A program made the position numbers and the translations under genes. A stretch of 64,000 bases of DNA, from positions 3,173,680 through 3,237,679 of the forward strand of contig OZ037767.1 of NCBI GenBank assembly GCA_964035545.1. Reading direction: 5' to 3'. How positions within the stretch are numbered: the first letter of the stretch is position 1; each line of letters starts with the position of its first letter. This document shows, one piece after another, positions 35,725 to 52,999 of the stretch. The notes under the pieces are model-generated. The model was not told the DNA's origin and did no database searches. It saw only the letters and a program-made list of their open reading frames with translations. The stretch is from Bugula neritina (Eukaryota; Animalia; Bryozoa).

Positions 35725-38647
35725 TTGAATAAAATATTCATATTTTAGTTGTACCTATATGCTAAAGCTGTATATACGATACAGTAAATATCCTAATAGC
35801 AGTTGCAATCCTTCTTTACATTTTTATTTCTAGAAGTCAAAAGTTTGCTATTAGAGTGATCTTTATTTTCTAGATTTTGAATATGCCGGACTACAGAATA
35901 GAGTTATGTGCTACTGTGGAAACTCAGGCTACAATAAATATGGATCTTCGACTAACTGCAAAAAAAAATGTAAAGGTGACTCAAGTCAAACTTGTGGTGG
36001 TAAAAGGCAGAATACTGTATATAGAATAAGTAAGTATAGCAACATGTAATTTTACAAATTTTAAAATATTCAAACTTTAAAAAAACTCATTAGTATGGGT
36101 GCGTGCGTGTGTGCGTGGGTTTGTGTGTTGTGAGTATAGTTTTTGCTTAAGTTCTGTTCAGCATGTAACTTATCATTATATCTATTAGTTTTTATTAATA
36201 TTTATTGCTGTAAATATTTCTTACTATATATTCAATTTACTTCCTGTTACTATATGTTACAATTTTGCTTACTAGTTCCGATAACAAGCACAGCCATGCC
36301 CACTACTACAACTACTACAACACCAACTACTACTACAACTACTACTACAACTACAATGAAGTCTACCCTAACTACCACTTCCACTACACCAGATGTCTCT
36401 ACTACTACAGCATCTATAAGTCACCAGATAACAGCAATAGAGAGCATCTCAGATGTTGGTAATGCAACTCTAACTGATGACGGTACGTGGGTATTACTAC
36501 TATATGCGTATATCATATATATGCATATTATGTGTATTATATATTTATTATATATAATATATATTATGTATATTATGTGTGTGCATGCATATTTACATAT
36601 GCTATTGTATTTACAAAAGTAAACTTAAAAGCACTTTATTAATTCATTATTCATTCATCTAAAAAACAATTTTCAACTCCTGCTAGGCGACCAGGTATTC
36701 AAATTTGAATCTTTTCAAAGTTTGATTTATACATATACTGACACATTTTCAGAGTTACAGGCAAACCAACTAACCAATGTCTAAGAATTTTCTCAGCTCT
36801 TTGACACTATAGTGAAATTCTTTAATAAGCAGTTTTATTATGCTCCTAAATGATATTATATGTCACTGAATATATGATAAAATTTGCTTTACTAAAAAAT
36901 ATAACAAATTAATTAAGTCATATTTTTCAAAAAAGTTTTTGTTTACTTTTGTAAAGTTATGGCTTATTTTGCCGAAAAACGCAGCTTCTCAAATATTTTG
37001 ATATTGATGATTTGCAATAAAACCTATAATAACTTGTTGATTAAGTTGTTTTCACAATAAGTGTTTGATGTATCTGCAAGCAGATCATAGGCACATAAAC
37101 ACTCTTTGTCAAGAAATTGTGAAAATAACTTGTTAATTAACACCTAATAAAATTTCTATTTATTTAAACAACATAATATTATATTAAATGTATGCTGTTT
37201 TCTATAAATAATTCAACTTTCAATAGTAGAACAAAGTGTACACATAGCTCAATGCTTTGCCAAACTGAGCACTTATACTAAAAGCCTGACCCTACTTGAA
37301 TCTTTTGAACAAAACATTTGAATAATTACTCATATTAAACGTAAAAGTAGTAATTCTGTGTTTCAACATAGGAATGCCTGTGATCCTGGGAGTCTATATA
37401 GGAGCTGGAGTAGGGGTGGTGGCTGTAGCTGCCCTTATTGCCATTCTGATATGGTTTCTTGTGGCAAGGTAAAATTTTATTACACTTATAGGATAACATT
37501 ATAACCATTTATTTTTTGTTATTTTTCATGCAAAGTAGCAGGTTTTAACTAACTTATAAGTATCTGCAGTTTCTATTTTAACTATTTCAATTATAATATT
37601 ATAAATTATAAATTATCATACTATTTTAACTATTTCAATTATAATATTATAATTAAGCATTAGAGCTCCTAGTTTGGCATGTTTTGGGTAACTTATTTCT
37701 ATTTTTGATAATTTTTAGAGTGACTTATTGTTTTTAATTGTACAATTAATAACTCCTTGATGAAAACATGCTACATTGTTAACAAATAGCATCTTAAATT
37801 GGCTACTGTTTATTTATGCTCGTGCCTACAGATTTGAAAACGTTTGACTAATTTCCCATTAATTCCAGCTCATTCGTTTCATACAACAACTTATACAAAT
37901 GAACTGGCATTGATTTTCGTTTCTGCTTGCCTCATCAATTAAGTTTTATATAAAATATTTATGTTTATTTAGAAGTTTGAACTTATTTTATTTTATTTAT
38001 TTTTGTTTTATCAAAATTTTTAACAAGAAGTAGAAATAATATGGGGTGTCACCAAAAGAAGTAACCATACGGCCCATTTTTACCTAATAGTAAAGGAGGA
38101 TCGAGGAGTGTATTTAATATCTTGAATTGCTTATATATATTTACATCAACAAAAAAGCGTGTGAATGTATAATTGCAGGGGAGTCATAAACTGTAAAAAA
38201 GATCAACCTGATAACAGCCTGAAGTACAACAACCCGACTTACATGGTGACAGGCATAACTGACCGCAACAACTACCCTGACTCAGCTACACCAAACTTTA
38301 CCTGCGTGCCTGCGGAGTCTCCTCCCCCTAGCTATAGCGACAGCATGATATACGCAAATATTTTTCCATATTCAGCCAATCATAATGACTCTACTAATTG
38401 TTTAACCTATGACACTCCTGTAACCAATCAACTTGTAGCTAACCCTGATCAAGGTGTCACCGAAATGACAGCTGAACATTCAACCAGCTCACAGGTAACA
38501 GCAAGTAAACAAGCAAACAATGGAGATGTATATGCAGTTGTGTGTAAGAGTAGGGGAGACAACTTCAGTGGTGACGCAGTATATTCCTTGGCAGGCGAGG
38601 CTGAAGATGATTTGGTTGTTGTAGAAAATGACTTGTATAGCACATAG
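34748..38647 (+). CDS. WSC-domain type I transmembrane receptor A (SP-WSC-Thr-rich stalk-TM-Tyr-motif tail); 372 aa
   Basis: Exons 34748-34799, 35131-35268, 35874-36029, 36276-36482, 37372-37468, 38179-38647 (1119 nt). WSC: YELIGCYQDR..RAL..ATVELCVSFC..YAGLQNRVMCYCGN..CKKKCKGDSSQTCGG..VYRI. TM: VYIGAGVGVVAVAALIAILIWFLV. Tail: YNNPTY, PPPSY, IYANI, VYAVV, VYSL, ENDLY. Confidence 0.9.
35310..35400 (+). mobile_element. Degenerate SINE tRNA-like head in an intron of WSC receptor A
   Basis: gagagcagcagactgtagtggttaaagcac..agtttgaattc resembles the 5' end of the 55.3 kb copy. Confidence 0.5.
35661..35720. repeat. (TA)n microsatellite
   Basis: Direct. Confidence 0.95.
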
Positions 38648-39601
38648 CCTTGCTGTTAAATACAAATAGTGTGTAAATATAATAATATGTTATATTATAT
38701 AAATATGCTATACTAAATAATTGCTTGACAATCTGTGTATAATAGATAATATCTCTAAATAATAAGCATACAAACTACCACATTATATAATATAGTACAG
38801 TATACTATAACATATAAATAAATACAAAATGTTATTATTACAAAGTAAAATGCATTTTTTGTAAAATAGACTTATTCTTTTATACAATATATAAATAAAA
38901 TATAACATCAATAGATTAAGCTGAAAAGACAATGATTATTTTATAGCAGTATCAGATTCACGCATATCTTATAAACTTCATCATGTGACAGCTAATTTCC
39001 TGAGTTTTTATTAGGCCAATAATAGAGGCATCACAACACTAGGCAATATGGTGTCTCATGGCTTTTCAAATTGAACATTCTTGATTTTTACAAAAAAGCC
39101 CCATATGCTATGTTCCCACCTGTCCATCAATAGAAACTAATAAATCTATCAATTGGAATAATATGTAACAGGTTAATTTGAGTCTGATTTTAACTGGTGG
39201 CAGACCATAGACAAATCTCAACTTCCTCGAAGTAGAATATGGTAAACAGTTGCGATAAGCTGTAGGTCAATCAAACATGTTCCAAAAGCCTCTGTACCAA
39301 CCTTATAGCAGCATATATCATTAACAGTTTCTAAACCATCATATAAACTGTAAGAAAGCTCAGTCTCTTGCATGGCTCACAGTTTATCAAAAACAAACAT
39401 GAGATTAGATAAGAGCATTGCTTAAGCTTCACACCACACAGTGATTGTTGAAAACTAAAAACAGAGAACTTAAAGCTACGGTGGTTGACTATATATAATC
39501 AGTATGCAACTTTATTAAATATTCAATGTAGTTCTTAGTGAAACTTGTAATTGACAGTAACTGCAGTTTGTAAACCAATAGCTTACAGTATTCTGTCAGG
39601 C

Positions 39602-42600
39602 ATGACTTTCTATTGGACATCCTTCTACCTTGTGGTTTACATGTATGGTACCATTACTTTATGTTACAATGGAAGAGGTAAATATATTTGCTATATTAAT
39701 GTAATACTGCAGTTAAGTTTTCATACAGGTTGTAGAATTACAAACTATAGAATTTATAAGTGCATCATTTGTAAACAGGTGATCATAAAATATATGGAAT
39801 ACTTTGTAAATTAATAAACTATACTGTTACCGCTAATATTATTTTAGTGCAGGCGTATAAAACTGTTCATCTCGGATGCTTTAAAAATGGAATAGGATCT
39901 GCAGATCGCTTATTAACGGGTGCTACCTTAGATTTAGAAAGTCAGGCTACAGTGGAGTTTTGCACAAGGTGGTGCTTTTTCAACAGTGAGTATGAAAGCT
40001 GTCTCTAAAGCTTACCAGTTAAAAAGTACGCAAATTAATATGTAGTTTCCCTTTAAGATTTCTTTCTGCCGCATGCACACTATGCATATATGGAAATCAA
40101 ATGTGATAAATAAAAGTGCATGTACTACAATATGTAATACACAATACATATAATGAAATGTAATATTTAATTAAGAATATATGATATATTATGTAGAATG
40201 TTTTTATTTGTGTTTCAAATATCAATGTTGTTTATATCAAATGTTTTGTAAATTAGAGTTTCAATACGCTGGGCTGCACTTTGGATGGAAATGTTCTTGT
40301 GGAAACACTTTACAGAGAAACCTCCAAAAAAGTGCTAGTTGCAACCTACGATGTAGAGGCAACTCTAGTCAAGTGTGTGAAGGATACTTTAGTATTTCTC
40401 TTTATTATAAACAAGGTACATATCATGTACTGCTACATGTATTTTTGTGTGTAGGCTTTTTGTGAGTGCAATATTAGCCTACTTTCTACTCAAATCTAAG
40501 TCTACACAAACTGCTATGGGCTCGCATTTGCGTAGAGAAAGGAAAATTAGGTAGCAATTTAATAATAGCTTATTAACCTTTTGAAATCATCTTTGATCCA
40601 AGTTGTTGCAATAAATAAGGCTATAACATATCCTACCATTTCTATTTAAATATAAGTTAGAGACTGCCCATAAGTTATTGCTCCTTTTTAAAAGTTATTT
40701 CCTACTACACCGATATGATAAAAAGTGATGCTTATATATATACTTGAACTATTTCTAAGTACAGTTACTAAAGACTTCACATTTATATTTTTACTGTATA
40801 CTATTAATGTAAAAAAACATAAATGTAATATTTGTTTGAAATATTATATAATTACATAGATCATATCTATGCTGCATTACAGCACTGTGTCACAATCACT
40901 AATTTAATTGTTGATTATCAAATAATTTCTTGACTTTTTGCTACAAAGTCAATAAAAAGGCCTATACTGTATTTATATTTTATGTAAAGAAAGTCTAAAA
41001 GACTATTCAACTACAATAAATAAGAAAAATACCCCCAAAAACATTTTCATGAAAAGTACAACTATTTCAAATGCTAATCCAGTTTAGTAATAAATAATTG
41101 CCTCAATAAATATGAAACTGGGGCAATCCATATTTTATAGAAATCATTGTAAACTTGATAGATTGGTAGACTTGGTCTATTTTACAGAATCTACAACAGC
41201 TTCTCATGCGGTAACTTTAACATCTGGAAATACTGAAACATGGCTACCAGTTACTAGAAGAAGGAAAGCCTCATCTACAGCTCTACCTACTCGATATCTG
41301 CCAACTGTGACGGTTGCCTCCGCTACTCCAGTAACACCCTCCGGAACCTCAACTGCTAAAATGAAAAATAAAAACTCAATTTCCAAAACCTCAGTCACTA
41401 AACCTGTAACCCCGGCAGTTGCTTTTAATTTTTCTACAGTCATATCTAAGCAGATTACAACATCAGAAGGGAGTAATATCAGCATATATGTATCCAACAA
41501 CCCAGATAATCTACCACAAGCAAAAGGTAGAGTATAATGATTATATTATGGTACAATTATAGCTATGCATGCAATATTTGCAGCACCAATTAGGGTGATA
41601 TTTCAGAACTACATGGTAGAATTTTGTGTGACTATAAATAATGTTATATAATATTTTTTATTAAGACGTAAACAAAATGTCTTAATTGGGTAATAGGATT
41701 TTCTAATATAATTTTATATTTTCTTTTTTGAAACTTAGCGAGATAATGCTTATATAAATTTTCATAAGAAAGAAATCTTTTGCTACATAGAAAGCAAAAT
41801 TAATTTTAGTCAAGTCAATTCTGTGGCAATATCTTGAGTTCGCCATTAATTTCTTGAATTTGTATTCAAACAACTTATTGATTGCGAACCTATATAACAT
41901 AAATACATTAATTTTATAGATAAAACTGCGACAGAAGATATGACAAAGGTTTATATAGGAAGTGGAGTTGGAGCCAGTGCGCTATTGATTATAGTTTTCA
42001 TTAGCATAATAGTAGCAATCAAAAGGTGAAGAATATTTCATGTTGAGTGATCAAGCTTCTGATGTTAAGAAATTTTCTACCATATCTCTGTATATAACAT
42101 ATATTACCTAAACTAACAAAAAATTGATTATTGTTGTGAGATCTATGCAGTATATTATCACAATTTATACAGATTGTATACTAATTTCTTTTTTTAACAA
42201 TTGATTTTGTAGAAGAAAAGCTAATGGTAGTAGTCCTACCTCTCGCAAAAACACTGCTCACTATAATAATCCAGGCTACGAGGCAAGTCCCATTACAAGA
42301 AAGGCAACTCCTAATTTGTATGAAGAAGATCATACCTATTCATCAATTGATGATTGCTTGGGAAGTGATTTGAATTCAAGCTCACCCTACTACAGTGTAC
42401 CACCTTTAGCTTCAGATTCCAAGACTATGTCTGTGTCAGAGCATAGTACGTGCGGCGATACCACCTCAGCAAAATTAGGAAAACAGGCTTCAAAAGATTA
42501 CATTGCCATCGGTGAACAGGCAGAAAGATTCTCACCACTCAATGAACATGTAAAAGACAACTCCAGTACTAACAATAATGTCTCAATTCATGGTGCCGCA

Positions 42601-42912
42601 ACTCTTACTAAGCATTGTGGCATACCTAGTGAAGTTGTAGCTCAACCTGATGTATCTACTGAGAGAATTGGTAGCTGTGACGGGGGAGATAACTCTGAAG
42701 CAGACTCACCATACTACAGTGTTCCACCGCCACTAGATAAAGATTATGAAGTCACATCCGACTCTGTATATTATAGTACACCGTGTAACACTCTCACACC
42801 CTCTGGGATAGAAAGTCAGTTGCCAGATGGGTTGGTTGGTGATGATGAATTGCCTACAGAGGAACTTTATTCTGTGGCCTGTGATTTTCAAGATGATTTA
42901 GAATCAGAATAA
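39602..42912 (+). CDS. WSC-domain type I transmembrane receptor B (long Ser/Thr stalk, long Tyr-rich tail); 505 aa
   Basis: Exons 39602-39677, 39848-39985, 40257-40415, 41188-41526, 41920-42025, 42213-42912 (1518 nt). WSC: HLGCFKN..RLL..ATVEFCTRWC..YAGLHFGWKCSCGN..CNLRCRGNSSQVCEG..SLY. TM: VYIGSGVGASALLIIVFISIIVAI. Tail: YNNPGY, TYSSI, SPYYSVPP x2, YYSTP, LYSV. Confidence 0.88.
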
Positions 42913-43049
42913 GTAGTATGAAACCTAAGACTACGCTATCTGCAATGCCAAGTGTAATTAATGTTCTCCTATATATTATGGAGATTTGAGCTTTCTATTA
43001 TATAATAGTTTATTAATTAACATTTATGAAATTGCAATACATGTTATAG

Positions 43050-43165
43050 AATGGTTCAAGCACTAGTCTAGTATATGGTGCATGGTTCAACTCTTGACAG
43101 AGCCACTATAGCTAGAGTGGTGTCAGAAAAAGCATTCAGTCATAACTGCTGTCTCGCCTCAAAGT
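43050..43165 (+). mobile_element. Degenerate SINE copy downstream of WSC receptor B
   Basis: tggttcaagcac..ggttcaactc (B-box-like)..gtggtgtcagaaaaagcattcagtcataactgct resembles the family core. Confidence 0.55.
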
Positions 43166-45075
43166 TTTTAAACCATGTTAGTACAATAATTATATAAACT
43201 TCCAATTATTATTATTTTGACAGAAATAAAATAGACATATTAACATTAATAATAATGCTTATTTATAAAGAACAGTTTGACAACTGTTAGATTATCACAA
43301 TGTAATAGTATGTCTTACCAGTGATAAAGCTGCTAGATGAAAGAGAACGTTCACTCCGTTTGTCTGGGTTTTATCTGCCTTAGCTTGTAGCTATCTCAGC
43401 TATACGGTGGCTGGTAGGGCAACTCTTAGTAACACGATAGCTCACGTATCTGATAGGCTATTGTCATTAGCTAAACTCTCAGTGTGCCACTATAACAACA
43501 ACTATTTTTTATGGTTTATAGGCAACCTTATAATTTTTACTGTTGTCTGCTTCATTTTACAGTTTTAGTTTGTAAAAACAATAAAAATCCCCACCTCTTT
43601 TTATACCACTAGAAAGCTTCAGTGAGCTAACTTTGTGCGTAGACATATCTACCTATGACATAAAAATATATACATATTATTTGAACACATTTATTAATGT
43701 TGAATTATACATTTTAATCAGTATTTTTGTCTTTCTACAGAGTAGAATGCGTACAAGCATAAAACTTTATGCTTACTAGAATAAGTACGCCCCAAGCTTT
43801 CAAAAGATGTAATAATATAACGCTGGAGATTTCTATACTAGCTGCTACTCAACAGTGAATTATATATAACTTAGTTGATTGACTGCATAATGTATAATGC
43901 AAAATTTGAACTTTGCTCTTTACTAATAACCATAATAATAAATAGTAAACTGGGAATGCCCTTGCTTTTCTGATTCATATATTTAACTTCTATATATTAT
44001 GATATAAGCAATTTCTAGTTATTTTTATTATGAAGTTAGAATTGCACAGTTGATTTAAACATTTTTTCCTTGTATAAAGATCTGTCTTTCGCAAAAAAAA
44101 GTATGTTGAATAATTTCCAGTGTAAGATCTCGAGGTCTGAATCATATATAAAATACATAATAGTAATACGAAAGTCTACAGTCTACGCAATAGCTGATCC
44201 TCTTACTACATTTCTACACTCAAGTTGTGTTCTTGTTTTGTGTTTATATTTTATTATGCAAAGCAAAAAGTACAATTGTATTTCCACAGTAAATGAATGG
44301 ATCTACTCTAGTTTTTCCTTCTTTGTAGCCTACATGCTAAAGCTAGTATACAACTAGTATACACTATAACTAGAACATGATTTGATGGGCATCTTGTTGG
44401 AATTTGAATTTTCTTGGAAACCTCAACTAAAAATACAGCAGTAAATTAGGAAGGCATGGCTTGTAGATTTTGCAAGCTGGTCAAACAGGAGAGAAAATCT
44501 CCTTATACACCAAACACTGGAACAAACAAATATTATATTTAATAATTTAAGTAAAGGGAGATTGCATTTAGCTATATATAGACTCACATATGGCATTTAT
44601 ATACCATATTACATTCTAAGTAACTCTACCTATTTTTGCCAGCTAGTGATCACCACCTGACTGCCACTAGAGGGTGCTACACTTTAATAGCCTAAATTCC
44701 TCAGTATTCCATGCAGTTTTTAGTTTGAGGTGCAACTACAGCCAGAACAAACATCTCTTTCAAAATACTTTTATTAAAAAAATTACTGAAATTCTACACC
44801 AGCCTGCTGTGAGGGTTATAAACACTACGCAACCTTAGTAGAATCATAGTTGGAAATTACTTCAGTATCAAATATCAGTCTATAGATATTGTGGGTGTCA
44901 ATGCATATGAATGCTTGATTTAATTAAAGTCGCAGCGCTATTGTGACAAATCTTCTGCTGATGTCATCATATGAATACATGGCATGACTCAGTTCTTTTT
45001 GTCATAATATTATTATTCTTAGAGTGAGAAACTATCAGTTTACTATGTGGACTAAACAAATATAGTTACGACAGC

Positions 45076-46411
45076 ATGAGGGTGCTGCTAGTCATCTCAG
45101 TTCTTCACCTCTTTCGCTGTCAAGGTATGCATGTATTAGTTCTTCATCTTATTAAGACTGATTTTTTACTGATATTACAGCTAGCCATTTCGGCTTTGCT
45201 TCTTATGTTGTAAAAAATATATGTATGTTATTTTATAGGCTGTTTTAGTTAAAATTTGTGATCTTTGTTGCCTAGATTTGTGTCATTGTTTTTTAATGCT
45301 GCTTATGTTGGTTTAAGTTGCATATACTCGGCACATTTGTTGTGACTTTAACTGATAAAACTGTCACTCAGTTTTCTGGATGGCATCACCAGAATCACTT
45401 GTTTGTTTGTGAGTTTTTATTTAAAAATACTTTGATGACAATTAAACTGTAGAGGTATTAGCTAGCAATATATTTATAAGTAGTAAGCAAGTTAGTAAGT
45501 ATATATTAAGTAGTAGTAAGTAAATAGGCACTAGTAAGCTAGTAAGAGTACTTTGTTTGTAATCTAAGCAAAAATATTTTTTATTTCCCAGAGGTTTTAT
45601 TGACAACTGAAATTGTTGTGTGAATTAGAGCCAAGGGGGCTTATGAACTCTGTTCCTTACCAACCAATTAATGTTAAACCTACACTTGAATATTGTATAC
45701 ATACTATTCAAAATAACTGGCATATTAGTAGGAGTTACATGTAAACTGTGTACTCATCATATGATCTTAACTTCAATTTGAAGATGCAGTGAATTTGTTT
45801 ATATAAGACTCTGAGTCTAATCAAAAAGTCAATTCACTGCTTTCTCATATTAAGGAGACTCAAATGGTTTTTCTGCAAATTGATTTTTTTATCATGGCTT
45901 GAACATCAAAAAAGTAACTCCTTTAGCAATATATTAATTTAATTGAATTCAAAATGACTTTTCGAAACTTGACATGATTGAAAAAAGATCCACCTTGATT
46001 GCTTTTACAACTTCCACTTATTGCCTCACAAACATGCACCCTTCTTTAGAAAAATATAATCATTTATGGTAACAAAAATAATCAGTAAGTTTATTTGACA
46101 TCAGAATGAGCTTTGTATGTAATCTTCTATTATAGATGAGCGTTCTAATAAATCTACTGACTTCTCATTTCAGCCACATCTCAACCTCTCTATGAAGTGA
46201 AATATAAAGGTTGCTTTAAGGACTGGTTTATCAGAACATTAAAAGGAAGCTATGCAGATTTGGGTAGCACAGCAACAATAGAAGCATGTGCCCAGATGTG
46301 CTTCTTGATGGGTAAGATAAGGTGCATTTATCATGAGCTCTACTACTACTGCTATTGCTGCTTCTGCTGCTACTTCTGCTGCTACTTCTGCTGCTGCTGC
46401 TACTGCTACTG

Positions 46412-46461
<50 letters not shown>

Positions 46462-46908
46462 ACTTCTACTGCTAATACTACAACTACTACTATTGCTGCT
46501 GCTGCTGCTACTGCTACTGCTACTGCTACTGCTACTACTACTACTATTGCTGCTGCTGCTGCTGCTTACTATACTGCTACTCCTATAGTTATTTTCCAGT
46601 ATATGCTAAGGTGAACATTGTGATTTCAGTATATGCAAACTATTAACCTTCTCAACTTATACTAAAAATATGACTCTAAAGTATATATTGCTCTCTAACA
46701 GTAACTATATGCTGCAGGTTATAAACTGATTGGGCTACAGAACTACTCGGAATGCTACTGCGGCAATAGTCTGAAGAGTTTCAAGAAAAGTGGCTGTAAG
46801 TTGCCATGTAGAGGCAACTCCACTCAGATATGTGGGGGACATTGGCGAAATTCTGTGTATAAGATAGGTAAAGGCACCTCATAAGAAGTATCATTACCAT
46901 ACCACAAT

Positions 46909-46946
<38 letters not shown>

Positions 46947-46947
46947 A

Positions 46948-47006
<59 letters not shown>

Positions 47007-48434
47007 AACACACAAACACAAACACACACACACACACACAAACACAAACACACGCATGTAGCACATGTAACGCATATAACGCATGTAACACACACACATG
47101 CAACACACATGCAAAACACACAGTATATACATTCTATTTGTTATAGTTGAACCCAAGGTTCTCACAACCCCTTCTTCCACCACATCCTTTGATGTCACTA
47201 CAAAAGATATCATTGAGGAAAATAGAGGTGAGGCTGCAAAAAGCACGAAGTAAATTGTATATATACTAGGATATCTTCAGCATGCTATTATTAAATTAAA
47301 GGTCATACTTGTCTCTAGCTGAGTATATATAATTAGCTTAGACTGAGGGTGGTATATGAATGACCTGATTGTCATTTAAAACCATCCAATAAAACATGCA
47401 GTAGCTAGTAGTTGACCTATATTACTTATAATATAACCTAGATATGCCTATGCCTATGCTTGTATGTACTTGGTCTTGTTATATTACTTAGTATTAAGTA
47501 ATTAATTTCAATTAAACATTATCCTAATGTAGTAATTATGCATAAATTGTAGTAAAATGGAATTGTACTGATATTTACTGTTTTTTTGTAGAGGAAAGGC
47601 AAAAGATAACTATTGGATTTGGAGTTGCAGTTCCTTTGTTTATAGCAATATTGATCATGATGATTGTCATCTTCATTGGTAAAAGGTGAGTCATAATTTC
47701 AAATTCTATAACTTTCTAGAATCTTCTAGAAGGATATAGAAGTCTCTGAGAAAACCACCCTAAATTGTGCTACAAGATAACGGTAAAAAGTTCAGCTGGT
47801 AAACACACTATTATGCTTAAAAGCAGCCAGTTGAAAGCAGTGTAAACTTTCTACATTAATGTTAGAATTTGCAATTTATTTTGTATATACATTTTATTAT
47901 TATGTCATTTATCTACAGTTTTCATTCACAGAGGTGAATGCAGAATTTCAGTTGTATTAAACCCTACTACTTCTAAAGAAATTTTGTAGCCTGAAAAGTT
48001 GTTTTACCATGTAAAATAAACCATGCAGCACCAGACCTAAACACTAGAAAAAATTCATTGGTCCAAACTTTTACAAAAATGGTTGTTTTAACTTTTTTAC
48101 ATTAATTGTAGTAAGTAGATCACAGAGAATTCAGCTATATTGACAGTAGCGACTAAAAATATTGCTGATTGTTCACTGCTGTAGAGTGCAGCTTGATGTA
48201 ATTGCTAGATTTTAGTAAATAAACTTATGGTAATTTTCTAGCCGCAACCAGACAAAGAAAGTGTCTGTAGACAATACACCAAAGTCATCGGAACAATCTG
48301 AAGAAGACGGTTATGAGAAGTTAAGGAAGACTGTGATTGGCCAGAATGATCATGTGTATGCTTCAGCCTACGAGACAGTTGATGGGGCAACTCCCTACTC
48401 ACTTACACACTCATACTGCAACATACCTAAATAG
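45076..48434 (+). CDS. WSC-domain type I transmembrane receptor C (short stalk, hemITAM-like tail); 234 aa
   Basis: Exons 45076-45124, 46174-46311, 46718-46867, 47147-47227, 47592-47685, 48242-48434 (705 nt). WSC: YKGCFKDWFIRTL..ATIEACAQMC..IGLQNYSECYCGN..CKLPCRGNSTQICGGHWRNSVYKI. TM: ITIGFGVAVPLFIAILIMMIVIFIG. Tail: EEDGYEKL..VYASAYETV..PYSL..SYCNI. Confidence 0.9.
46340..46582. repeat. Compound (CTA)n/(CTG)n trinucleotide repeat, intron 2 of WSC receptor C
   Basis: Direct. Source of the poly-L, poly-T/A and poly-C/Y ORFs in the track. Confidence 0.95.
46912..47122. repeat. Imperfect (CA)n microsatellite, intron 3 of WSC receptor C
   Basis: Direct. Source of the (VC)n ORFs. Confidence 0.95.
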
Positions 48435-49337
48435 CTTATATAGCTTAAATGTAAATAGTAGATATACTTACTTTTCAAAATATTTTAATATTTCATTCAA
48501 GTTGAATTTTTTCTGTAAATAGTATCAATTTTGTAACTTAATAGAAATATATATTGAATTGTATTTTTATATGAAAAGTTTTGAAGTTATGAAATTATAT
48601 TGGCAAAAATGTGTGTTGTTTACTAATATAAGTATATTACATATTAATATATGTCATATTAATATTAATATATATTATATTACAGATTAGCAAATGAAAC
48701 TATGTTAATTTATCATCTTGCCTTATTTACTCAAGAATGACATAAAAAAGGACAGACAACTACAGTTGCTAACAAGAGTACACTAAGCTCAAACCAAAAG
48801 GAAATTGAACCAACCATCTGATAAGAATGAAGCTTGAAACAAAATATACTATCGCCATTTTTTGTGCCCCAAGAATTATTATCTGAAAGTTGTTGAGCTT
48901 TTTACTGTCAATAAGTTACATATAATATCCAATGAGCCATTTTCTTTGAAAATTGCATGCTCTCAAAATAGAACGCATGTGAATAACTTATAAAGAGAAC
49001 ACCTGTGATATAATTAGCAAAAAAATAAATTTTGCAATTTCATTACATAACAAATAGCAAATTTCAAAAATGAAAATGTTAATTAATTATGATAGCCACA
49101 TTAATAATTATGAAGTTACTGTTACAGAATTATTTTCCTTTGGACACAGACAGTACTGAGGCAAAATGAGTGCAAAGTAGTATCATTTATTAATTTAATT
49201 TCATAATTTCCAAGTTGGAACAATATAAAAATAGCACTATTCTTTAAACAAAAATAAATACTATAGCTGTATTGCTACTGTAAATGTTACATAAAGCAAT
49301 AAAATTGGTCTCCCATTGTATAACTGTGCTTATGTGC

Positions 49338-49920: not shown

Positions 49921-52203
49921 TCACCACCTAACATCTGCTTTGTGTTCTTCTAATAGACTCCAGCGTTTGATGGTCTCATAGCCTAGTATGATGGTGAAAG
50001 AGAAGATGGTGGACTGAGCCATACGGGCAGTAATAGCCTTAGTGAATAGCTTCATGCCTTCGTACTTCCACAAGTCCGACAGAACTGAGACCAGTGTACC
50101 TTTACCCTGCACCTAATAACATAGAAGAGTGGAGCCAAGGCTAAGGAATCTCTATGTTATCAGCAACTTCATACTCAGGGGAGATAAAGCCAAAACAGAT
50201 GGAAGTGGGGCATGTTATTGGAACAAATGAAGCGTAACGTGTAACACATAAAACAATGTCAAATTATTCAAATATAATGTAACATTGATGGAGCATTTAT
50301 TCAAAAGCATGCTGGTAAGAAAATAAATTAGACTGTCAAGAACAAAAGCTCACACTTTCAATAAGTGCAAAAGCCATAAACATCACATAATGCACTTTAT
50401 AAAATGCTATGCCAATTTGATCCCTTGCGATTATTGTGATCCCCAATACACCGTAATAAGATACATTGCATCAACATAACAACATCGTGCACCAACTCAA
50501 CTCACCTGTATTCTAGTACGGCTAACATCCAGGAAGTTGGTTAGAAGAGTAGCTGTACAGCCACCCAGTGGAGCAGCAACACATTGTATAGTCAGTCTAG
50601 GAACCCAGCTAGGACTGATCCCCGCCAGCAAGTCTACAACCAGATAATGTGACACTCCTTAATATAACATGTCTGTAGTGTTACACCCCTTACTATGTGT
50701 GTAGTCTTACACCTCTTACTATGTGTGTAGTGTTACACCCCTTAATTTGTGTGACGCCCCTTTTTCTGGATAACAAAACAATGATTGTACTATTACCAAA
50801 AGTATTCTTCTATCTAGAGCTTGTTGCTAAGCAGCATAAGTAAGACTAAAACATTGCTGTAAGCAATATATACATATAATTACCTGAAAATCTGTCATAA
50901 AAGAGCCACCAGAGGGCGCTGTGAGGAGCATATACTAGCACCGATATGAAGTAGCCTTTGTAGAAGCCTCTAATGCCATAGTTAGAGTATACAGCTTTCA
51001 TTACTTTGAAAGAGGCGCCAAGCCTGTTCACAGAACAAGTATTTATTAGGTCACAAAAAATACTTGTCCATATTAACTACAGTGGCCAATGTCTATTATA
51101 ACATATCATAACACAATACAATATATAATATAATATACAGCATAACATAATATATATTATATGATGTAATATGTATTATATTATAATATAATATATTATA
51201 ATACATTATATTATAATAAAATATATTATATAATATATTTTGTCACCAAAATGAAGGAAAGACAGTTTCCAACAATTTGGAATCTAAATTACCAGTAACT
51301 TCAAAGAACTAGTAGCTAGATGTTCATTTCCTTGAATACATCGGTCATCTCATAAAAACAAACTAAACACAAAACTTACAGCCAGCATAAGGAAAGCTTT
51401 CACAATACAGTGAATAAATATAGCTTACCTTGACCCTGAGGCGGTGTCAATGTTGAGAGTGTTCAGGTGGGTTCTGCCGGGTTTGATGGGGTGACCCTCC
51501 GTCTTAGTGTTGCCGAGGAGCATCATGTGCTGAGTCACTATGTCTAGAGGCACCACAAATACCTGACTCGCTGTCGACGCGCAGCCACCAGCTATAAAAC
51601 TTTTCAACTTGCGCGACTCGACATTGTGATTATGCAGCCATTGCCGTGAGCCCTCGTAAACAGTGATATACGCCATCTATAGAAGAGGAAATGACATCAC
51701 TAACAGGAAGTGTGACTGCAAACACACTTAGTTAATGTTTGTACAGAAAAACAACAACTAAAAATAGCACAACTCCAACTACCCAGAATATATCTCATGG
51801 TTTCTAATAATTAATATTTATTTCAGTAGCAGGTCTTAGCTTTTCTACCTTCATGAACTCAAGAATGGATAATAACTATAATTGAGAGTAACACATTATG
51901 TAATAGAAGGTTTAGACACAAGACCTGTGGAACTACAAGTAGGGAGTTGATCCAATACCCTCTATACAATCCTTTCACACCTTCTCTCTGTGTGATCTTC
52001 TTAAAAGCATCCCAGGTGCCATTATATAATATCTTCTTGTTTTGAACTTGGAGCCTCGTCTTCACAAGACTTAGAGGATATAATGTCGTACGAATGCAAG
52101 CACCAGACAAGAGCGCCAGGGGGTAATATTTGGTTTTGTCCATCATGTTCAACTCGATTACTTGTATATTGGAGGCATCTGTGGTCTCCACGCCTTCAGC
52201 CAT
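49921..52203 (-). CDS. SLC25A44: Mitochondrial carrier SLC25A44 (branched-chain amino acid carrier family); 328 aa
   Basis: Exons 52203-51925, 51676-51429, 51023-50884, 50633-50506, 50112-49921 (987 nt). IQVIELNMMDKTKYY..YPLSLVKTRLQVQ..YNGTWDAF..KGLYRGY; KSFIAGGCAS..VPLDIVTQHMM; GFYKGY..YAPHSALWW; GYETIKRWSL. These follow the SLC25A44 pattern. Confidence 0.92.
50650..50762. repeat. About 25-bp minisatellite x4 in an SLC25A44 intron
   Basis: Unit approximately gtgtagtgttacaccccttactatgt. Confidence 0.75.
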
Positions 52204-52999
52204 TGTCACCACCTTTATTATTAAAATATTCTACTCTGTCTAAAATATAACCTTAAGATTTTGATGGTTTTATGGTAAGGGTCATTAAGTAGAAATATAT
52301 AATATAGAGTGGATTGTCCTTGTGCTTAAATGTGTGACTACATAATTGGATGAGATGAATCAAAATAATATAACATCTCTAACTACATTACAGCTATGCT
52401 TTATTGTCGAATCATAAATTAAAGTGGTTGGTGTTTGATAGTTTATTTCTGGTAATGGCTTCAAATTCCATACATAACCTGTTAAATGGTGAAAAACATA
52501 TTATTGTGGCATACATAATCATCATACATAGCTACTTATTAGTTTTAGTTTCAGCTGCATATACTAGTTTTTTGTCCTGGGAAAATAAAAGCAATGTTGT
52601 CAACTAAAAAGATACTGTAAACAGGGTGTTTTCCCATAGATGTTTGATGCTCAGTTATCTGTTTCAGTAAATTAGAGAAGTCAAGAAAACTCAGTTGCAA
52701 AAGTACAATTACTATAAATCGACCTGAAATAATATAGTACAGTGTTTTCTTTTGAAACAATCACAACATTCTGATTTTAATCTAATAGCTAAATTAAGTA
52801 ATCAAAAGTCTGTACAAAAGTATTTTTTCGTTAGACTAAGACGTGACCAAAATTTATGAAACATCCATTATTGCTTATTTTTTTATTGTCAAACTAATAG
52901 TAAATGTAATAGGCCTACTAATATTAATACTAATACTAATAGTATCACTAATAGTAATACTAATAGTAATAGTAACTGTTTCAGTAGCTTTTTGGCAGC

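Follow-up and report, generated by a model that had tools for sequence, protein, structure and literature searches.

A hemITAM-like tyrosine site in the tail of a small WSC-domain receptor of Bugula neritina, with canonical spacing in the assembled lineage only

Does a bryozoan receptor signal through a hemITAM, the hemi-form of the tyrosine-based activation motif of immunoreceptors, of the kind known from Dectin-1 and CLEC-2? The question is raised by a stretch of 64,000 nucleotides of the Bugula neritina genome (GenBank assembly GCA_964035545.1, contig OZ037767.1, positions 3,173,680 to 3,237,679 of the forward strand; hereafter, the window). In this stretch, an initial annotation made from the sequence alone had noticed a gene for a WSC-domain receptor (WSC receptor C, here gene C) whose cytoplasmic tail contains the octapeptide EEDGYEKL, and had proposed a convergent Dectin-1 analogue that signals through Syk- or Shark-type kinases. 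The answer has two sides. Gene C is a real, expressed, single-copy gene that encodes a type I membrane protein. The exact Dectin-1/CLEC-2 pattern, ‘DEDG-YxxL’, is limited to the assembled lineage, and the site is best called hemITAM-like.

Positions given below are window coordinates, and tyrosines (Y24, Y43 and Y58) are numbered in the peptide encoded by exon 6. Database work on gene C was run exon by exon; the exons themselves were read by eye, with splice phase as a guide. Six exons, all of compatible phase, make up the gene, and its predicted product of about 234 residues runs from a signal peptide through one WSC domain and a short stalk to a membrane span and a 64-residue tail with five tyrosines (Table 1). 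As the WSC domain is split by an intron, exon 2 alone (positions 1-34 of the Pfam profile PF01822, 15 bits) scores below the cut-off of 27.8 bits; exon 3 (positions 41-82, 39.7 bits) is recognized as WSC. The Pfam search of the tail and of the transmembrane exon gave no match. Exon 1 was read directly from the sequence: it is followed by a GT donor at 45125, its phase agrees with that of exon 2, and both the exon and its donor are kept in L007, a contig of the sibling lineage described below, in which exon 2 is about 95% identical. The exon 1 junction is supported indirectly, by phase and by the length of RNA contigs. The membrane span has no charged residue and is immediately followed by K-S-R-N-Q-T-K-K, and these basic residues indicate that the tail is cytoplasmic. 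Signal-peptide exon, WSC domain, span and C-terminal tail, found in this order, bear out the type I topology with a WSC ectodomain that had been proposed.

Expression and reading frame were established with RNA contigs. Contigs from four runs of four studies (X1, X2, X5 and X8) join exon 4 to exon 5 and run from 48242 onward into exon 6, and the fact that they skip both introns indicates that they derive from spliced RNA. The introns flanking exon 5 are skipped with GT..AG ends; the joint between 47227 and 47592 was seen with such ends in three runs, and the transmembrane-to-tail splice (47685|48242) in four. The phase of the latter carries the hydrophobic transmembrane exon into the tail frame that had been annotated, thus confirming it. 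Translation of 48243-48437 yields exactly the peptide previously quoted, with RNQTKK at its start, EEDGYEKL within it and NIPK before the stop, so that peptide and exon stand; the frame, however, begins at 48243 and not at 48242, as had been given. The nucleotide at 48242 is the third base of a serine codon split by the intron (AG at 47684-85, C at 48242). A reading that starts at 48242 was rejected, as its frame is full of stops, and the alternative that the exon is read in another frame in cDNA is excluded by the spliced contigs. On the 5' side, RNA contigs extend 373-428 nucleotides (nt) upstream of 47143, a length that would accommodate the two WSC exons, exon 1 and a 5' untranslated region (UTR), and a loose contig end before 47143 matches the end of exon 3. 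On the 3' side, the UTR reaches at least 48646. Searches at the DNA and protein levels found a single copy of the tail exon in the assembly.

Within the tail, EEDGYEKL lies exactly where the initial annotation had placed it. The hemITAM is defined by acidic residues at positions -2, -3 and -4 before a YxxL (PMC3576117). In the window allele, E(-4), E(-3), D(-2) and G(-1) precede Y24, and all three positions of the published definition are acidic. The single cytoplasmic YxxL of a hemITAM corresponds to YEKL (48312-48323), which is identical in the sibling lineage and could be used in signalling. Within the half of the tail next to the membrane, YEKL is the sole Yxx[LI], and it lies 25 residues from the membrane; the second Yxx[LI], YCNI, is distal. 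A serine precedes the octapeptide in a casein-kinase-2 (CK2)-type context (S-E-E-D). In CLEC-2, it is phosphorylation of the YxxL, and not SH2 binding, that the acidic residues promote (PMC3576117).

Tyrosines make up 7.9% of the tail, and most of them belong to a distal cluster. The second pair pointed out in the initial annotation, YETV-x11-YCNI, is indeed present (YETV at 48369-48380, YCNI at 48414-48425), with Y43 and Y58 at a loose spacing of the type found in ITAMs (tyrosine-based activation motifs of immunoreceptors). The strict ITAM, Yxx[L/I]-x6-12-Yxx[L/I], is absent, and the pair fits only if valine is allowed at +3. The pattern of immunoreceptor tyrosine-based inhibitory motifs (ITIMs), [S/I/V/L]-x-Y-x-x-[I/V/L], is matched by SAYETV, and the match is kept in the sibling lineage.

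Comparison with public data brought in this second lineage. No RNA contig was more than 99% identical to the window, and nearly all were 90-95% identical. Three DNA contigs from host-associated metagenomes of the Joint Genome Institute (L005, L006 and L007) represent the sibling lineage: they are colinear with 48136-49270 and 38615-47122 of the window, with conservation of splice sites and of the order of gene C and its upstream paralogue, gene B. Divergence is about 5% in exons. Mismatches against L005 amount to 15% of the aligned sites in the upstream intron and to 6.8% (plus about 9% of gap columns) downstream of the stop codon, and overall blastn identity to the sibling contigs, with gaps counted, is 76-87% over the aligned stretches. 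In the sibling lineage, 48305 is T in place of A and 6 nt are inserted after 48306, so that the motif reads EDDGNGYEKL, a variant found in DNA (L005 and L006), in protein (P0001) and in RNA contigs of four studies. As a consequence, the acidic triad is found at -6 to -4, compared with -4 to -2 in the window allele. YEKL and the next eleven residues are invariant between lineages, and all five tail tyrosines are kept. A second gene in the same genome was considered as the source of the transcripts with the insertion and rejected: because the tail exon is single copy, the variant transcripts must come from another lineage and not from a paralogue. We take the variant contigs to represent a sibling lineage within the same species complex. 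Most public data under this species name thus seem to come from another cryptic lineage than the assembled individual.

Substitutions between the two lineages were counted by region (Table 1). Both WSC exons together show 12 synonymous and 3 non-synonymous differences, a pattern that indicates strong purifying selection on the WSC domain. In the tail, the distal cluster (HVYASAYETV...YCNI) appears to be the constrained part; the numbers are small and their direction is clear.

Table 1. Features of gene C and of the tail exons of paralogues A and B (window coordinates), with coding differences between the window allele and the sibling lineage
Feature	Position	Strand	Description	Differences from sibling lineage
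Gene C	45076..48437	+	WSC receptor C	
Exon 1	45076..45124	+	Start codon, signal peptide MRVLLVISVLHLFRCQ, and a G that forms an Ala codon together with CC of exon 2	
Signal peptide				0 synonymous, 4 non-synonymous, no indel
Exon 2	46174..46311	+	First WSC half; AG acceptor, GT donor	4 synonymous, 2 non-synonymous, no indel
Exon 3	46718..46867	+	Second WSC half	8 synonymous, 1 non-synonymous, no indel
Exon 4	47147..47227	+	Short Thr/Ser-rich extracellular stalk; covered by RNA contigs	
Exon 5	47592..47685	+	Transmembrane segment ITIGFGVAVPLFIAILIMMIVIFIG, then Lys (translation)	
Exon 6	48242..48437	+	64-residue cytoplasmic tail (63 codons after a split Ser codon) and stop	
Tail, 23 codons before Y24				1 synonymous, 5 non-synonymous, 2-codon indel
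Tail, 40 codons from Y24 to end				4 synonymous, 2 non-synonymous, no indel
EEDGYEKL	48300..48323	+	Acidic triad, Gly, YxxL; hemITAM-like, also YxxPhi sorting-type	
Distal tyrosine cluster	48351..48425	+	HVYASA, SAYETV, PYSL, YCNI	
Paralogue A tail exon	38165..38647	+	YNNPTY, DVYAVV, AVYSLA	
Paralogue B tail exon	42205..42912	+	YNNPGY, then EEDHTYSSI, SPYYSVPP twice	

Two introns of gene C contain long repeats: a CTG/CTA trinucleotide microsatellite at 46330-46590, within the WSC domain, and a CA dinucleotide repeat at 46905-47100, in the following intron. These repeats account for the long artefactual open reading frames (ORFs) of poly-Leu, poly-Ala/Thr and poly-Cys/Val type in the ORF list. 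Downstream of gene C, on the minus strand, 49921-52212 contains exons of a mitochondrial-carrier-type gene, as judged from ORF translations with carrier-like repeats.

How often a motif of this kind would arise by chance was estimated from 200,000 shuffles of the gene C tail. The strict form, [DE]3-G-Y-x-x-[LI], appeared in 3.5e-5 of the shuffles, [DE]3-x-Yxx[LI] in 6.6e-4, and the spacing-tolerant form, [DE]3-x(0-3)-Yxx[LI], in 2.2e-3; in shuffles of the longer tail of paralogue B, the latter frequency rose to 1.7e-2. The relaxed pair Yxx[LIV]-x6-12-Yxx[LIV] was found in 3.2% of the gene C tail shuffles, and an ITIM-type match in 15%, which makes the ITIM match weak evidence. Exact hits are therefore rare per tail, yet a few per proteome are expected by chance, and the scan that led to this locus spans thousands of windows.

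The paralogues offer a view of how the site may have originated. Genes A and B share the transmembrane-exon pattern YIGxGVG, and 22-23 residues into their tail exons, close to the membrane, both have YNNPxY, which is an NPxY motif of PTB type. In addition, DVYAVV of A fits the ‘core-2’ motif, [A/D]VYxxV, of the FcoR receptors of Botryllus, and EEDHTYSSI of B is an acidic-Yxx[I] site that is invariant, together with its flanks, in the sibling lineage (P0004). In a MAFFT alignment, which is short, Y24 of gene C aligns with the NPxY tyrosine of A and B, and QNDHVYASA of gene C aligns with EEDHTYSSI of B. On this alignment, the idea that EEDHTYSSI is the homologue of EEDGYEKL was dropped, a decision that is only moderately secure. 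With moderate confidence, the comparison suggests that the hemITAM-like site of gene C arose by remodelling of an ancestral NPxY site and was not assembled as a Dectin-1-like module. It also suggests, with similar confidence, that acid-preceded tyrosines may be a general property of the small A/B/C family.

Elsewhere in the genome, the nearest WSC paralogues (L008-L010) were considered as genes of the same kind and discarded: they have no comparable transmembrane and tail exons within 10 kb, and their architectures are different, with multiple WSC domains. Large tandem arrays of WSC-domain exons were also detected at G000:C3:15.15-15.86 Mb and G000:C4:23.06-23.08 Mb, with dozens of matches at 42-54% identity to the WSC exon of gene C; in the C4 array the repeat recurs every 1-2 kb, approximately.

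Homologues of the tail were sought in protein databases. A word-based protein search retrieved the sibling allele only (P0001). An exhaustive profile search recovered this allele again, together with two further candidates, P0002 and P0003, which were rejected: they are unrelated proteins built of repeats, and what they have in common with the tail is a VIGQ-D-x-HVY word. Both are metagenomic proteins with repeats of about 40-45 residues that contain VIGQDGHVY or VIGLNDxVYAQKFD and look propeller-like, and their case illustrates that short tail profiles attract repeat proteins.

If the tail signals, the genome should encode proteins able to read it. Candidate readers were sought by profile searches of the whole assembly for SH2, tyrosine-kinase and phosphatase domains, and the exons of a Shark-type gene were judged separately. 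A Shark-type tandem-SH2 kinase, invoked in the initial annotation, does exist: on the plus strand of G000:C7:~14371200-14378400 (L003 and L004) we found, in the domain order of Shark, an SH2 domain, ankyrin repeats, a second SH2 domain and a Syk-like kinase. SH2 matches lie at 14371513 and 14374073, with ankyrin ORFs between them, and the kinase exons occupy 14376762-14377601. The ORFs contain FLVRDS in the first SH2 domain and FLIRKS in the second, the arginine being kept, as well as HRDLAARN and a DSDYYKA activation loop, and one of the kinase exons has human SYK as its best PDB match (3.7e-22), followed by ZAP-70. This appears to be the only tandem-SH2 kinase locus of the assembly; no canonical Syk locus was seen in the SH2 and tyrosine-kinase searches. 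At G000:C3:23740128-23748502, a tandem of SH2 domains is followed on the same strand by tyrosine-phosphatase exons, and this locus probably encodes a phosphatase of SHP-2/Corkscrew type. Hence, genes for readers of the activating and of the inhibitory kind are both encoded, and their tie to the gene C tail is putative.

The same searches yielded two observations of a different kind. Tandem arrays of tyrosine-phosphatase domain exons are found at G000:C1:3.96-4.23 Mb and G000:C6:8.02-8.43 Mb, suggesting lineage-specific expansions of protein tyrosine phosphatase genes. Furthermore, certain small contigs (e.g., C10, C15, C33, C37, C44, C66, C101, C105, C133, C170, C176, C201 and C304) harbor intron-less, full-length kinase or phosphatase domains, and the matches contain 5-18 in-frame TAA or TAG codons and almost no TGA. 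These contigs look ciliate-coded, and part of the assembly thus probably derives from a ciliate, be it an epibiont or a contaminant.

Our tentative interpretation, to which we give slightly less than an even chance, is that the tail is a phosphotyrosine docking module in which Y24 would be hemITAM-like in the assembled lineage only. Clustering of the receptor would lead Src- or Syk-type kinases to phosphorylate the tail tyrosines, to which SH2 proteins would then bind. At Y24, the acidic run would favor phosphorylation and the leucine at +3 would suit SH2 binding, which together make this tyrosine a credible activating site for a Shark-type kinase. The distal pair YETV-x11-YCNI, which is better conserved, would be no less likely a candidate for the main docking role, whether as an ITAM-like element for Shark or as an ITIM-like one for the SHP-type phosphatase.

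Several observations weigh against this interpretation. Conservation of EEDGYxxL in close relatives had been proposed beforehand as a check, and the defining spacing fails it in the sibling lineage. The acidic stretch appears to lie in the weakly constrained, fastest-evolving part of the tail, and the contrast between the proximal and distal parts is not significant (Fisher p=0.24). Matches to hemITAM-like patterns arise fairly easily in acidic, tyrosine-rich tails, and in paralogue B such a match is found at another, non-homologous site. YEKL conforms just as well to the YxxPhi endocytic signal of the textbooks. Lastly, a profile search of 1.84 billion representatives found no tail homologue beyond the species complex; fast evolution or missing bryozoan data may explain why the tail is untraceable outside the complex in these data.

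What else could the site be? Part of the evidence is compatible with trafficking: YEKL would act as a YxxPhi signal and the serine-acidic run as a CK2-type acidic cluster in an endocytic or recycling binding protein. YxxPhi signals are bound by the mu subunit of clathrin adaptors, and acidic-cluster sorting is found in furin and other cycling receptors. The distance of YEKL from the membrane, 25 residues, is in line with such a role. Moreover, both lineages keep the serine-acidic run (S-E-E-D in the window allele, S-E-D-D in the sibling) and YEKL while the spacing between the two shifts by two residues, which is what one would expect of two independent motifs and not of a hemITAM unit fixed at -2 to -4. 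Trafficking leaves unexplained, however, the four further conserved tyrosines and the distal constraint, and sorting and signalling through one tyrosine are not mutually exclusive. We consider trafficking possible, if somewhat unlikely. The chance estimates and the sibling comparison bear, in turn, on the view that the octapeptide is fortuitous, a product of a fast-evolving, acidic, tyrosine-rich linker in a protein where only the WSC ectodomain and the distal tail would matter. In support of this view, the 23 N-terminal codons of the tail evolve at about a neutral rate, and an indel interrupts the motif itself; the sibling lineage lacks the canonical spacing; the look-elsewhere effect is large, with thousands of windows to set against a chance per tail of 3.5e-5 to 2.2e-3; and the position of Y24 at the NPxY tyrosine of A and B indicates that its context has been remodelled recently. 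Set against these points, Y-E-K-L-R-K-T-V-I-G-Q is invariant despite a non-coding mismatch of 7-15%, and an acidic run is kept upstream in both lineages. We regard a fortuitous match as unlikely.

The distal half of the tail admits still another interpretation, in which the receptor is inhibitory or modulatory: SAYETV and the distal tyrosines would recruit an SHP-type phosphatase, and Y24 would be secondary. SAYETV conforms to the ITIM pattern and belongs to that half of the tail which is under constraint, the genome encodes an SH2-SH2-phosphatase locus, and a precedent exists in amphioxus BbLcLRR, a receptor with YATV and YSEV motifs that is phosphorylated by Lck and is inhibitory (PMC8211107). 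Yet the frequency of ITIM matches among shuffled tails and the restriction of the comparison to one lineage lower the value of the first argument, and we hold an inhibitory receptor to be rather improbable. Between a docking module and these alternatives, we lean with caution towards docking.

As it stands, the locus provides a verified gene model, with expression, for a small WSC receptor, and an exact short-motif match that failed its first conservation test. Were the tail to signal through Shark, gene C would link a putative carbohydrate-binding domain to Syk-family signalling in a lophotrochozoan, and we found no paper that describes such a receptor. It would then offer comparative immunologists a tractable example, in a colonial and symbiont-bearing animal, of the swapping of tyrosine motifs (NPxY, hemITAM, ITAM/ITIM) among paralogues. 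A broader speculation is that bryozoans independently evolved a lectin-type innate axis, made of single-WSC type I receptors (A, B and C) for a glycan or surface ligand, with interchangeable NPxY, hemITAM-like and ITAM/ITIM-like modules read by a Shark-type kinase and an SHP-type phosphatase, gene C being the activating, hemITAM-using member. This scenario is doubtful in our estimation. If true, the axis would be a lophotrochozoan counterpart of the Dectin-1-Syk and Draper-Shark pathways.

How does gene C compare with known systems? In our literature search, no paper was found in which a hemITAM-like tail goes with an ectodomain made of WSC only, nor any such paper on bryozoans. The receptors Dectin-1, CLEC-2 and CLEC9A share with the window allele the acidic residues at -4 to -2, the glycine at -1 and the YxxL, and are likewise single-pass proteins; the gene C ectodomain is only putatively carbohydrate-binding. 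They are, however, type II proteins with a C-type lectin domain, while gene C is type I, with a WSC domain (PAN/apple fold). Further differences are the 25 residues that separate the gene C motif from the membrane, its tail of 64 residues with four more tyrosines, the loss of the spacing in the sibling lineage (EDDGNGYEKL), and a genome in which a Shark-type kinase is the only one seen, with no canonical Syk. A convergent Dectin-1 analogue finds no support beyond the motif match and the presence of the Shark-type kinase gene, and we consider it quite unlikely. Nor did we find support for the glycan-binding WSC domain of the initial annotation, as beta-glucan binding has been shown for fungal WSC lectins only. 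Binding of beta-1,3-glucan was demonstrated for fungal SiWsc3, in which three WSC domains act together; no obvious pocket is present in a single WSC domain, and in animals WSC domains, for example that of Kremen, bind proteins (PMC9024836). Fungal Wsc1 has the layout of gene C, in which a WSC domain at the N terminus is followed by a Ser/Thr stalk, a membrane span and a short tail for signalling (PMC9024836), but the tails of this class signal via Rom2/Rho1 and not through tyrosine motifs, and gene C has one WSC domain where SiWsc3 needed three.

Closer parallels are found among invertebrate type I receptors. In amphioxus, BbLcLRR resembles gene C in being type I, with WSC in the ectodomain and acid-preceded YxxV tyrosines, which in BbLcLRR are phosphorylated by a Src-family kinase (PMC8211107); it differs in its LRR repeats and its length of 699 residues, its inhibitory activity was shown in heterologous human T cells, and it is not an orthologue. 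Draper, CED-1 and MEGF10 represent the type I layout with a tail that combines NPxY and ITAM tyrosines read by Shark, and Drosophila Shark reads the ITAM of Draper (PMC6219719). Paralogues A and B carry NPxY in a similar manner, at the position of Y24 in gene C, in a genome with a Shark-type kinase; unlike gene C, Draper has an EGF/EMI ectodomain and a canonical ITAM, whereas in gene C the NPxY is lost and valine stands at +3 of the first tyrosine of the distal pair. In Botryllus schlosseri, the FcoR receptors are type I and bear tails with [E/D]3-x-YxxL hemITAMs, ITIMs and other tyrosine ‘core’ motifs, and their alleles differ in having a canonical or a non-canonical motif, as gene C does between lineages (PMC12582321). 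The FcoR ectodomains are of immunoglobulin type and the genes are paired with Fester-family genes in an allorecognition locus, with no sequence homology to gene C. Given the FcoR precedent, a hemITAM on a type I invertebrate receptor is not new, and gene C falls among the already known invertebrate type I receptors with immunoreceptor-style tyrosine motifs.

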